Below are positions 18,903 through 24,900 of a stretch of 64,000 nucleotides of DNA, in pieces. Within the stretch, counting starts at the first letter, position 1. The number at the start of each line of letters is the position of its first letter. This DNA is from Ascidiella aspersa (lineage: Eukaryota): contig OZ004609.1 of assembly GCA_963924565.1 (NCBI GenBank), forward strand, positions 22,382,001-22,446,000, in the 5' to 3' direction. Under the pieces are notes generated by a model, which searched no databases, had not been told where the DNA came from, and saw nothing but the letters and a program-made list of their open reading frames with translations. A program made the translations under genes and the position numbers.

Positions 18903-21900
18903 TTATTCCGAAGTTGGCCTTGTTCTTATTTCGGTCTTATGGCTAGAGTCCAGGTAAACACGCAATGCAGTTACGAAGACAGTGCACTTGCTTATGCAAA
19001 ACTTGTCACTACACAAAACGTATATTATTCCTACCATTTGAGATATTTACAAACTATAGTTGGAAAAATGCGGTATAAGAAATGTCCGACCTAATAAGGA
19101 AAAACTTAAAAACAAAAATTGAAATAGAGCTTTTCAGGGTAAAAATTCCGCCGTGAAGCCATTTTCATTGGGTATGTTGACTTCGATTTAAACAATGGTG
19201 TCTATGATACTGTATAAAAATACTCACCTTTTGACGACGTCGCCAAATAATGCTTTGGGTTTGTTCGAAATATCGTAGTAACCACTCTCTTGCAGAACTC
19301 GTTCGATTATCGTCTGCAACAACAAGGCTCGCGATATGTTTGTAACATCAAGTCCGCATTTGGACTGTACGATAGGTTTGGGGTAAATGCAAGTAGACCT
19401 CTCTTCGGCTTAAATTAACCTCAACATTTTCCAAGATTTTAAGGCGTTTGTTTTAAGCATTAACCGTAACTTAAGGTTATCTTCGCCAGTAAAGGGCATT
19501 TTAACAAATTCCAAAGTGGATCTACAACCCATCGCTTGCCAGATGACATATTTACAGTAGAAGAAAAAATGAGTGCAACCCCACCATAAAACAAGCGTTA
19601 CTTCACCGACCTGCATCTGCGCGTAAGTGATGCCCTCCTCGTAAAGCTTGCCTCCGTCGGTCACCGTGGAAACGTAGCAGCTTCCCAACAGCTCCCGCGC
19701 CTCCGACTCCTGCGCGGCTCTCTGCGTCAGGTTTGAGGAGGAAGAAGAGGAAGAAGAAGATGGAGCGTCCACGATAAAGCCGAGATCGATGGTCTCGTGT
19801 GATCCCGTGAGAAGCTGGAAGCGGATTGTTTGTTGTCGTGAGTAGGAAAAATAGTAGGGTTTATGGCCCGTTTATACTACAGATGAGCTGAGTTGGGCGT
19901 GAAATTATTTACACTATACAGCTGACAACTACTAACAAGGCAAGTTCACTTCCACGCTGCGATGTCCAGTCGAGCAAAGCTTGAAAATCGCTCTAAAGCG
20001 TATTTTTTTCAGGGCGTGAGTTGGGCAAAGCGTGAAATGCTCGCGACAATATAAACTAAATGCGCTTTGCTCAGCTCACCGCTGCTGTAGTGCAAAAGGG
20101 CCTTAAGTTGTTTACGATATGCATTTGTTGGTTTGCTAAATACTATACGCAACCCAAAAAATCGGGGATCGAAATGATCGAGCTTCTTTTGAAAAACAGC
20201 GACACTATATAAGAATAAAATGTTGCCGATGTAATAAGTTATTACTAATAACACACTGGCGGTGGTTTGAGTTGTTGACGAAAGATTGGAAAGTGAAAAC
20301 ATATATTTCGATTTTATCGATTATTCTCGCGTCGATATTTGTATTAAAAACTCAATTTCGTTTAAACATCTTCAAAATAAATTTTCATGGGGCACTAAGA
20401 AAGTTCCCCGACCTTATTTCAACCGTTTGTTTTGTTTTAAAAAATGTTTTGTTTGAAAAACAAACCAGGGTAAGGTAAATAAGTCGCAACCAATAACACA
20501 GACCTTTAATTGGCGCGAGGCAATGACTCTCAACCATTTTCAACCCGTGGACCCCGCTATTCAAAACTCAATTCCCTCTAAGAAAAATAGCAGCTGTAAA
20601 TTATACGAAGAGACTTTTTCACCTCGCTAGATTAGTACCAAATTATTAGTAATCAAGTTTGAATATATATTTTATCCCGTTTATGAAAAATTCCTGTACT
20701 GCTTCGATTTTAAAGCGGGCTCTGGTCATAACTGGCATTGCTATATTTCATCACCAACTAAATTTGCTTTTTTGGTCGAATTTCGAATTTTCATGTTACT
20801 TTTTAAAAAATACCTCAAAATCCTCCAGGAGAATTCCACCCCGGTTAAGAACCTGTGGCGTAAGGCAATATACAGAAAAGATGAATAGATTGCGGTAACC
20901 TTACTTACATGTTTGGCAAGTGTTTACTGTAATAGAACAATCAAACGAATTGACACTCTTAGAAATCGGCACACCGGTTTGGAAAGCGCTTAATAGCAGG
21001 AACACTGCGACAGCGCAGGTAAACAAGTAAGGCGAAACCGACCTTTTTCAACTCGTCCTTGAGCCCAAGTGACCTGCTGTTGGGTGAGAAGAGCGCCCTC
21101 TTGTAGCGAGAAATGATGCGTCGGCGGTAGTTTACGTCACTGGTGGGCGGAAGCTAAAAAACAATAAAAAAAAACAATTTCTGAAAATAGCTTGCTGCTA
21201 CAGACTCTAGTGCCCCTATTTTGTTCGCTTTCAGTGTCAAACGAATGTAAATTAGGAATACTTACCTGACGGGGGTCTTTAACCGGATCACTGTGGGGTC
21301 TGTGTCCTGGCATTTTTTTTCCTGGGTAAAACCGGGTTTTTTTTGGCCAGTATAAAACTAAAATTATTACTAATACTGACACTTACCTATTACCTACACC
21401 AAAACAAAAAGGCGAAAAGTTGACCTTCTGCCAATGCGCAGTTATAACTCGGGCCCACCTCCCTGTGGCGGCACCATATCCCTTTGGGAATGGTTGTCCG
21501 GAGAGGGCCTGAACCATTACTGACACTTCAGACATTATCGGCCTCCTTTTTGGCCAATGGGAAGACAAAGCCACTACCCTCTTACCTTTTACTTTACTCT
21601 TACTTTCTTTGCTTTCTTTTAGTTAGCAAAAAAAAAAAATGTAAATTAGGAAGTAGAACATGAGAGCTGGACTCGACACCTGTCTTGTCATTTTGGATAA
21701 GTATGGCCTGATACCGGTAAGTGTGGAGATCTATTTATGTCCGATATAATACCAAGTATTGACCCAATACCCTAGGTCAGGGGTCACCAAACTACGGCCC
21801 ACTGAGTTAGTTAATCCAGTCGCGGCATATTTCCTAAATGAAGATGAAGTATAGTTAAAATGTTTTGGGATGTAATTAAAACTAAATTTCAGTAAAATTG

Positions 21901-24900
21901 CAAACTGTACTACAATTTATTAAGGCTCACTACATTTATTATTGCATAATTATTTCACGAAAAAGACGTTCTTCCATAATTAAAGATTAAAGTGGAGTTG
22001 ACTTTTATTTAATTAAAAATATTTATATGACAAAATTTAGAAATGAATGCCTGTTAAGGACTATTTCACGTGGAATCACGAATACTGAACAGCGGGCCTA
22101 TTGAGGACACGTGAGGAACAGTTAGGCTACAATTATCCAGTTTAGAATGTGAGCTGATAAATCCTAGCCCTTGCTTTTAAAGTGGCCAACATGGGGTAGC
22201 TCTTCAATCACGCACCTGATCGATGAAGATGATCTTGTGAAGCTGGATGAGTGCCTGTTGAACCGGATCGCTGATCTCGCGAAGTTTGCTCGGAGACATG
22301 CTCAGCATCCGAGCAGATCCGGAGGTGGAGGAGGCTGCAAGGAAGACGACTCAGTTGGAAGAAAAATCGCAAGTGATTCTCGAACAAGGAAGTATATCTT
22401 ATGAATGGAGGTTGTAATTGCCAGGGAGTCTTGTTTTTACAAAACGACTTTTGGGCGACGCTATTCACACTTTAAAATGTTTGATCCCAGAGCCTTTTAG
22501 ATCCAGTTTCTCACTGCTGGTTATACTTACATGGTCGGCTTCGGGCAGAATACTGTCCTCTAGCTTGTTCTCGCGACGCAGTGATCCGATTTAGAGAAGA
22601 AGGACGCTGATCTGAAGAACCGTTTCGATTGCCTGTGCAAAATGCATTATTAATTAAAATATGCTTTAAATAGCGTGGTAGTATCGATAAGGTGGTTTCA
22701 CTGTTGAGCTGATGTTTGTCCAACAATTTCGGATTGAGCTGTTACTCGATGTCAAGCGATAGTATCGGTACTTATTCAATACTAGGGTAGTATCAGTACC
22801 AACCAATATCACATTAAGTTTAGCATTTAATCCATGATTTATCTAATTAGCGTTTTCCACTTCAAACTGTAATTATTTTAGAAAGTAGCATATTACCAAT
22901 AAAGGTAACGAAGTTTTTCAGCGCTAGACCACGATTTTTTCTTAACGACACCACCCCCAATTGTGGAATAAGGCAATGCGACCGTATTATTACTATTTAC
23001 CATATTCAAAGTAAAATTGTATTATAAACTTGCCCAAATCACTTTTAGCAATGGTCATTATTACCCGTGCAAGTTTTAATTGACTATATATCTTAATTTT
23101 TAGAAACATGGCTATATATTTCCGCATTATTATACATTTCAAATTATAACAATTGTGTTGCAATCCACCCACTGTTTCGGCTTGTCGAATGCTCTACGGA
23201 AGTAATATTTACTTTGCATGCTTAATTGCTTACACAAGATCACCGTCTCATGTTCGCACATAGGTAAATGATTAGCAGAACCATAGCTCGCTTTTAACGC
23301 CAGGTGACTAACCATCAAAGGAAAACATAACACTGAACAAACATAATAAAAAAAATCGTTTTACACAGCAAAAAAAACATGTATTTAGAGGCAAACTGTT
23401 GGCTTTGAAATTATGTTGACATTCAAAACCAACCGGTCATGTCGAAGCTGAGGGCTCTTCGTGGTGCTGCGTTCCTCAGGTCGGGACTGGGTGGATGCGG
23501 TTGCCTAGAACCGGCTGAAACCGGTCTTGCCCGGTTGCTATTCTTGCTCGGCGTTTCTTCTGTAGACAAGCAGTAGTTTTTACCAGTTAGTAAGGGGCTT
23601 GTGAATTAACAGTGCTTTCCTATAGTTATTCAAAGTTTATTTGTGGAAGAAAAGACAAATATAACTTAAGTTAACGCACGTCCGCTGAGAATATGTGTTA
23701 CTTTTACCCGACATTTCGATCTACGTTTATGTTTCTTGACTAACCTTGAGCAGTGTCGTTTCGCACTTGTCCTGATAATGATTCGAAGCCCAATGATTCA
23801 GTATTCTCGTCGCCTTAAAAATAGAAATGTTTAAGTTGTATAATGCTTAATAATGGCGCTGTTTCACGGTCAGTTTGACTGGCTTTTTAGACAGTTTTCG
23901 AACAAATTTAAAATACTTTTAAAGACAAAAGCCAGGACATTTAAACCAAACGGCGAAACAAAATACCAGGGACAGTCAAATCAGCGAAATTCGATTGTTC
24001 GATGTCAAAGTGTAGCCCTTAAACGTTTGGGCACAAGCCCAGTAAAGCAACCATGAAACCAACGCATAGCGCTTAAGTTTAGCAACCTTTCCTTGTATCC
24101 TTGATGACATCGTTTATCTCATCCTGTTCGACCAAACCGTTCTTATTCAATAACTCACCGTTCGCGCTGAACACCTCAGTGTCGCTCGAGTTGGTTCGCG
24201 ACGGGCTTGTCGTGGCCTGTGATGACGTCACGCTTCCGGCGGAGATCTCCAAAGGCTTGCCCAAACGTTCCGAGCTTTCCTGCGCAACGTTAGTGGTAAA
24301 TATGAAGTAGACGTATATGCGCTGAACAATGTGAATCGTCACAATGAAAAGAATGTTGCTTGATAATGCATTGCAAAGCCGAAAAGCTAGATCAGTGGTT
24401 TTAACCTTTTATGCTTCGTGGCCCCCTTTGAAAGGTTCTCGACCCTCGTGCCCCCCTGCTTATAAAAATACCAAGCATTGTGTTTAACGTATTTACTTAA
24501 CTTGGTTAGTCATTATAAATCTTATTCTTCGACGCCATCAAGGTATTTTTTATCTTCGGCTCTGTTTTGTACTGAGACAAGCGATGTCACTACATTCGTC
24601 GAGATGATTACTCGATTTTCCTTTTATTAATGCGTTGCTATAAGTCTACGTGACAAATAAGTTGTGCGTGAACCGCTTAATGTTGGCCTAAAAATGACCT
24701 TGAATAACCCTGTAGCATGCTTTATGCCAGTGGTCGGCAAACTTTTTTGTCGCGGCCCAAAGTACTCTTTTCGGGGCTATTGAAGGCCCGCGTAAAACCA
24801 TTTGATTTTAAGATGAAATATAACACGGTGCCTTGGTGCCCCAAAGACTACCATTCGCGCGAAAAAAAATTCAATTACATACAGTTTAAGTTGGCAAAAA

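Follow-up and report, generated by a model that had tools for sequence, protein, structure and literature searches.

The 64,000-bp stretch of DNA that was analysed here (the window) comes from the ascidian Ascidiella aspersa (NCBI GenBank assembly GCA_963924565.1, contig OZ004609.1, positions 22,382,001 to 22,446,000, forward strand). It contains a short insert that begins with the 5' end of U1 small nuclear RNA (snRNA) and that, judged by the exons around it, appears to lie in antisense orientation in an intron of a NEK10-like gene. Direct reading of positions 20900-22000 showed that the insert measures ~380 bp (21258-21639) and is bracketed by 15-bp direct repeats that are identical at 15 of 15 positions (Table 1). 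Exact 15-nt repeats around an A-tailed insert are the signature of target-primed reverse transcription (TPRT), and we refer to these repeats as target-site duplications (TSDs). The insert starts with ATACTTACCTG at 21258, the initial A being shared with the left TSD as its final base, carries GATCAC at 21286-21291, and ends in A12. A preliminary description of this DNA, made from the sequence alone, had reported the identical repeats, the approximate length and the A12 end, and all three were confirmed. Its small size, lack of coding capacity, TSDs and A-rich 3' end are thus those of a retroposon, and are shared by the SINEU-like short interspersed elements (SINEs), i.e., SINEs with a head derived from an snRNA gene.

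When the head of the insert was aligned with nucleotides (nt) 1-35 of the U1 genes of the same species, 34 of the 35 positions were identical, the difference being one missing T at U1 nt 29. These genes scored 144 bits each in a genome search and are arranged in tandem on contig C5 with a period of 1193 bp. The preliminary description had proposed a search with the Rfam U1 model together with an alignment to the U1 of the host, and the two gave different outcomes. The Rfam model did not match the insert region significantly (14 bits, E = 1.8), as expected for a 35-nt fragment, and the comparison with host U1 is therefore the deciding evidence for a U1 head. Some of the matched bases deviate from vertebrate U1, and these we take to be species-specific. 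To judge from this sequence identity, the alignment shows the head to be nt 1-35 of the host's own U1, in line with the 5' head from a U1 or U2 snRNA gene that characterizes SINEU-like elements. Past U1 nt 35 the alignment scores no better than chance, since 257 of 1000 shuffled sequences reach the same score. The similarity of ~52 nt that had been claimed earlier is thus reduced to 35 nt, which is longer than the 11 nt that had been considered too short for a U1 origin. No other copy of the element shows the head bases as the interior of a different element. Identity as a U1 retropseudogene was rejected as well, because the similarity stops at nt 35 and true U1 pseudogenes look different.

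A search of the A. aspersa genome with the 379-nt element returned 265 candidates, of which 40 were scored, and these were 82 to 100% identical to the query, many of them being full length and aligned from position 1 onwards. A 26-mer covering the junction between head and body gave 78 matches with at most two mismatches, spread over all nine large contigs, compared with 0 for the reversed control. At least 100 matches were found with a 26-mer from the body, and the family roughly comprises 100 to 300 copies. In an alignment of 30 copies, 10 begin precisely with U1 +1, adjoining unrelated flanks, and the others are truncated at their 5' ends by a few to ~80 nt. The TSDs and flanks of these 30 copies are unrelated to one another, and of 29 copies that were inspected, at least 10 are flanked by an exact TSD (10 to 19 bp) of their own. 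Measured against the majority consensus of this non-coding SINE, the divergence of the copies is ~2 to 12%. Subfamilies are separated by an ~11-bp indel and by either G or T at head position 16, and the window copy falls in the youngest group, with 98% identity to two other copies. The insert is therefore a young member of a non-autonomous poly(A) retroposon family of low copy number, which is made up of U1 nt 1-35, an unrelated body of ~335 nt and an A tail. All copies lack the same nucleotide in the head, and together with the invariant junction this indicates that the head was acquired once and then inherited.

The single inherited junction and the amplification with TSDs are thereby shown, and leave us in very little doubt that this is a U1-headed SINE family. 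The preliminary description had offered two interpretations, a U1-derived SINE family or a single template-switch chimera between U1 and a long interspersed element (LINE). The genome-wide count that it had proposed, which gave 78 copies with the common junction, dispersed and with their own TSDs and A tails, favors the first and speaks against the second. A single snRNA-LINE chimera was also rejected because the locus is not unique, no whole snRNA is present and the junction does not vary. As in SINEU-like families, there is thus one common head-body junction rather than a set of independent chimeras. Some copies are deletion variants, in which the U1 head is joined straight to a later part of the body (L038; C1:25013122; C2:5749748).

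An Rfam scan of the region gave no match to tRNA, 7SL or 5S RNA at E values up to 10. In combination with the two conserved T8 runs inside the element, this makes transcription by RNA polymerase III (Pol III) implausible. The absence of an internal Pol III promoter and the presence of internal oligo-T runs are both properties of SINEU-like elements. A classical SINE, with A and B boxes or a 5S or 7SL head, was rejected on these same grounds, as T8 runs would stop Pol III. In RNA run X12, reads of the element were found on the sense strand only, and reached a depth of up to 23 versus 0 to 2 in the flanks. A T>A variant at position 21365 is private to the RNA (9 of 9 RNA reads versus 0 of 35 DNA reads), suggesting that few loci supply the RNA of the element. 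Moreover, four X12 reads leave the element at 21574 and continue in an A-rich sequence unlike the family tail, which indicates that the main expressed copy has a different 3' part. The DNA run has a depth of ~5 at the insert, and contigs of two runs hold the filled 5' junction.

Information on the source of the family came from two copies in which the SINE is followed by U1 sequence, L025 and L051; the genome search revealed no further read-through loci of this kind. L025 (C8:19507448) consists of head nt 8-35, the body, A8, U1 nt 27-165, TACA and an A-rich stretch. Its U1 part is identical to U1 at 138 of 139 positions, and TACA corresponds to the first 4 nt of the 3' flank of the U1 gene, which would fit a pre-snRNA 3' end. 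Between the 12-bp TSDs of L051 (C4:7258043), the final 45 nt of the SINE tail are followed by an A-run, by U1 from nt 24/26 to ~126 and by an A-rich terminus. Since L051 is a retrocopy, it must derive from an RNA that ran from the body through the A-run into the U1 3' part, so that the past existence of such transcripts is shown. In both loci, the U1 sequence after the A-run starts 10 to 12 nt before the position at which U1 breaks off in the head, which is the pattern expected when an element inserts into a U1 gene and creates a TSD at nt 24-35. A source copy in a U1 gene that is transcribed by RNA polymerase II (Pol II) would account for copies that start precisely at +1, for the presence of one junction only, and for the fact that T runs are tolerated. 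That the source copy resided inside a U1 gene and was driven by its promoter seems to us somewhat more probable than the contrary, and as an overall explanation a SINEU-like family with its source in an interrupted U1 gene is likely.

According to this explanation, a poly(A) retroposon would have landed in a U1 gene at TTTAA of stem-loop I, an L1-type nick site, thereby duplicating U1 nt 24-35, and the interrupted U1 gene would have become the source gene of the family. Pol II would start at U1 +1 from the external U1 promoter, as the presumed driver, and the source RNA would begin with U1 nt 1-35 and then run through the body despite the two T8 runs. Priming of reverse transcription on the internal A-run would generate ordinary copies, and rare priming farther downstream would generate copies that retain the U1 3' part. 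The window copy would finally have been integrated by TPRT, presumably by an L1/Tx1-type LINE, leaving the 15-bp TSD and the A tail.

The U1 genes of A. aspersa belong to an array of 1193-bp units, each composed of U1 (+), U6 (-) and U2 (+), located at C5:29506522-29596512 (L001-L010, L041-L050). A U1 start is present in 46 array units, two of which are interrupted, and among the 44 U1 copies that are assembled in full, one substitution in one unit is the only difference. No unit of the array has a U1 gene interrupted by the SINE; the interruptions are an 8.1-kb LINE with a restriction-like endonuclease (RLE), which is located in U2, and a 5'-truncated copy. The 8.1-kb LINE is found in three units (C5:29536407-29544511, corresponding to L045:407-8511; 29550459-29558559; 29578733-29586820) at unit position 787-804, i.e., within the U2 gene at ~nt 23-40. 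Its open reading frame (ORF) of 1625 amino acids (aa) contains N-terminal zinc fingers, a reverse transcriptase (RT), and a C-terminal CCHC and RLE motif, and to judge from these features the LINE looks like a Utopia-type U2-targeting element. The 5'-truncated RLE LINE copy (3.1 kb; L048:6071-9170, C5:29572071-29575170) is joined to U1 nt 27. This unit lacks the sequence from U1 nt 28 up to the target site in U2, and its breakpoint coincides with the U1 spot of the SINE and of a second LINE described below. Apart from the array, there are 14 dispersed loci with plain U1 retropseudogenes, either full length or 5'-truncated (L065-L078; on C1-C4 and C7-C9), and in none of them is the SINE found upstream. 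U1 RNA itself is thus retrotransposed in this genome.

Several observations weigh against a source in an interrupted U1 gene. No locus combining the U1 promoter, the head and the body was found in the assembly with a 23-mer covering positions -8 to +15, which matched the 46 array units, two LINE or fragment loci, and one chance SINE flank. The SINE body occurs in 0 of the 46 assembled array units, and the array contains a 100-N gap (C5:29526161-29526260). The read-through copies number two, and L025 could have arisen instead when the SINE inserted into a U1 retropseudogene, of which at least 14 plain ones exist; L051 is harder to explain away. Promoters of the snRNA type normally give short RNAs that end at the 3' box. 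Finally, the dominant expressed copy, which departs from the family sequence beyond position 21574, may be a fragment inside another transcript.

U1 sequences are also associated with a LINE that contains an apurinic/apyrimidinic endonuclease (APE). In copies at C5:29596498 and C5:29779396 (minus strand), U1 upstream sequence is followed by U1 nt 1-27/28 and then by the LINE 5' untranslated region (UTR), the upstream matches extending over 389 bp (99.7% identity) and 146 bp (97% identity). A third copy (C1:37772867, minus strand) has a non-U1 site as its location but nevertheless begins with U1 sequence, from nt 2 onwards. Its ORF1 encodes 262 aa with a CCHC knuckle, and its ORF2 an APE-like segment, recognized by its motif, as well as an RT domain that matches Pfam RVT_1. 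In 3 of 3 copies, the U1-like part ends with ...TCAC (or TCAA) followed by T, which is the breakpoint of the SINE. The 5' UTR contains a stem with compensatory changes between copies (TTGAGC/GCTCAA versus TAGAGC/GCTCTA), and relatives of ORF1, with 39 to 41% identity, occur in arrays at C3:5.2-5.43 Mb and C7:14.2-14.8 Mb. A U1 head and a position behind U1 promoters are therefore also found in a LINE of the A. aspersa genome. Alignment of the SINE body with this LINE revealed no similarity, indicating that the SINE is not a deletion derivative of it. A LINE with a matching 3' tail, which the preliminary description had suggested looking for, was found neither by a tail search nor by this alignment, although with 40 candidates scored a diverged partner could be missed. 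None of the three LINE copies has a clean 3' junction with U1, all being degraded or interrupted, among others by a Gypsy-like element and a hAT-like ORF. The former, a Gypsy-like long terminal repeat (LTR) retrotransposon with a pol ORF of 1205 aa (L057:4106-7723, +), interrupts the LINE copy at C5:29.77 Mb. It is possible, though doubtful, that the SINE and this Tx1/L1-like LINE both occupy U1 nt 24-35, using the external Pol II snRNA promoter and snRNA-type 3' ends and carrying the U1 5' end to new loci.

A different origin of the head would follow the model that Kojima proposed for crocodilian SINEU. A LINE RT engaged on the body RNA would have switched templates a single time, to mature U1 snRNA, and added the 5' 35 nt of the latter. 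The family would then have propagated from dispersed copies by means of flanking or host-gene promoters, and L025 and L051 would be unrelated accidents, namely insertion into a U1 pseudogene or a second switch. Repeated 5' addition of U1 to SINEU-2 has been documented (Kojima 2015, PMC4494074), the dispersed U1 retropseudogenes described above identify U1 RNA as a retrotransposition substrate in A. aspersa, and a promoter-bearing master is missing from the assembly. However, a switch onto U1 RNA normally begins at the 3' end and not at nt 35, and the invariant junction in 78 copies with a private 1-nt deletion points to one acquisition. The model also leaves unexplained why U1 resumes 10 to 12 nt before the end of the head, a TSD signature, in both read-through copies, and why L025 has 4 nt of U1 gene flank, while the exact U1 +1 starts in 10 of 30 copies would need a promoter placed like that of U1. 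We consider an origin by template switching unlikely.

The shared breakpoint could also mean that the SINE is the non-autonomous partner of a Tx1/L1-like LINE that targets U1 genes, a stronger version of a source in an interrupted U1 gene rather than its opposite. Both elements would insert repeatedly at U1 nt 24-35 and be co-transcribed with U1, as R2 is with 28S rRNA, and the dispersed copies would be off-target. Besides the common ...TCAC then T breakpoint, this agrees with the location of 2 of the 3 LINE copies behind real U1 promoters, the clustering of ORF1 relatives (39 to 41% identity) in arrays on C3 and C7, and the U2-resident RLE LINE in the same snRNA array. In contrast, the SINE body and tail have no similarity to the 5' or 3' UTR of the LINE, 76 of the 78 head-bearing SINE copies are at unrelated sites with varied TSDs, the SINE is absent from all assembled array units, and a clean 3' junction of the LINE with U1 was not obtained. 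A strictly target-specific pair is, in our opinion, quite improbable. That the insert is a one-off chimeric retropseudogene, or that it represents the end of some other element (e.g., a DIRS terminus) with a fortuitous match to U1, as the non-significant Rfam match (14 bits, E = 1.8) by itself might suggest, is hardly credible in view of the 34/35 identity to host U1, the same junction in 78 copies and the full-length copies that begin at U1 +1 beside unrelated flanks.

With regard to the surrounding gene, the preliminary description had placed the insert in a NEK10 intron, which was right in substance. The exons that join as IDQ/LPP are present, as are further minus-strand exons with the kinase motifs GTGAFGSVY, HRDLTPNN and DFGLAR and with ARM-like repeats, a layout that we presume to reflect the NEK10 architecture. 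The orientation needs to be amended, as the exons are on the minus strand and the insert is antisense. On the strand of the host gene, the A tail reads as a T12 tract and the head as a splice donor (Table 1), and every antisense intronic copy would thereby plant a perfect consensus donor in the pre-mRNA of its host. At very low depth, no host-strand RNA reads were found on the insert, and use of the donor was not seen. The same intron also contains a repeat that resembles a miniature inverted-repeat transposable element (MITE), with ends GGGGTCACCAAACTACGGCCC (window 21770-21830). Another copy of this MITE-like repeat surrounds the read-through copy L025 (L025:1465-1495 and 2045-2075), which lies wholly inside it.

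Table 1. Positions of the insert, the adjacent exons and the APE-type LINE copies. Positions refer to the window, unless a locus is given.
Feature	Position	Strand	Remarks
Left TSD, aatgtaaattaggaa	21244..21258	+	Identical to 21638-21652
Head, copy of host U1 snRNA nt 1-35	21258..21291	+	Alignment with U1 genes of the C5 array
SINE body and tail	21292..21627	+	Unrelated to U1, Rfam families and the U1-associated LINE; common to the whole family
First internal T8 run	21313..21320	+	Would terminate Pol III; conserved in copies
Second internal T8 run	21337..21344	+	Conserved in copies
A-run, 12 A	21628..21639	+	10 to 12 A form the tail; last 2 A overlap the right TSD
Right TSD, aatgtaaattaggaa	21638..21652	+	Direct reading
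Head on the host strand, CAGGTAAGTAT	21258..21268	-	Perfect consensus splice donor
Upstream exon of the NEK10-like gene	22216..22350	-	Ends ...IIFIDQ, then gt
Downstream exon of the NEK10-like gene	21043..21153	-	Starts with ag, then LPPTSDVNY; 3' limit placed at gt after ...DELKK; RNA reads 21085-21158
APE-type LINE, 5' end U1 nt 1-28/35	L055:498 onward
APE-type LINE, 5' end U1 nt 1-28/35	L053 from 2496	-
APE-type LINE, 5' end U1 nt 1-28/35	L059 from 2121 (C1:37772867)	-

To our knowledge, a single paper has so far described SINEs with an snRNA head, and the crocodilians are the one clade concerned; our literature searches found no report of a U1-headed SINE in tunicates. The crocodilian families, SINEU-1, -2 and -3, have snRNA-derived heads (Kojima 2015, PMC4494074), and their transcription has been called open, since the promoters of U1 and U2 lie outside the transcribed region and do not travel along when the RNA is copied (PMC4494074). 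The A. aspersa family resembles SINEU in being a non-coding retroposon of <500 bp with a 5' head from a U1 snRNA gene, in its internal oligo-T runs without a Pol III promoter, in its amplification as a family rather than as independent chimeras, and in having Tx1/L1-type LINEs as likely drivers. It differs in its ascidian host and, because the head matches the host's own U1, an origin independent from crocodilian SINEU is expected and almost certainly applies. Unlike SINEU-2, in which repeated 5' additions have produced junctions that vary by up to 22 nt, the ascidian head is 35 nt long with one invariant junction. A Mariner target preference, as in SINEU, is not visible in the ascidian family, and a further difference of the ascidian family is that direct evidence points to a source copy within a U1 gene.

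Elements such as R2 are co-transcribed with their target gene, and an SVA subfamily carries a 5' transduction of MAST2. In these cases too, the promoter of a resident gene is used and host-gene sequence at the start of the RNA travels along. Here, however, the host gene would be a Pol II snRNA gene and the cargo a non-coding SINE, and most daughter copies land outside the target gene. L1-mediated snRNA chimeras, such as U6-L1 (Buzdin 2002; Garcia-Perez 2007; both cited in PMC4494074), likewise have an snRNA at the 5' end of a TSD-flanked poly(A) retrocopy, but they are one-off events with a whole snRNA and variable junctions, in contrast to the 35 nt and the fixed junction in 78 copies found here. 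Mobile elements inside multicopy snRNA genes are also known from Utopia, which are RLE LINEs that target U2 snRNA genes (PMC4640811), and from the Dada-U1 DNA transposons (PMC8869645). A Utopia-like element appears to be present in U2 of the same repeat unit in A. aspersa. These elements are autonomous, stay in their target and found no dispersed snRNA-headed SINE families.

The family in A. aspersa is therefore an independently arisen representative of the SINEU-like kind in a distant chordate, and extends this kind beyond the crocodilians. In this genome, the multicopy U1/U6/U2 repeat appears to serve as landing pad as well as launch pad for several retroelements. If the SINE and the APE-type LINE do both exploit U1 genes, they would be the first SINE/LINE pair parasitic on an snRNA gene, which would answer how snRNA-headed SINEs are transcribed. 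The two read-through retrocopies can be regarded as molecular fossils of the source transcript, and they suggest that the family was probably born in a U1 gene and launched from one. The question of SINEU transcription thereby becomes a testable model, in which a master copy in a U1 gene borrows the promoter of that gene.

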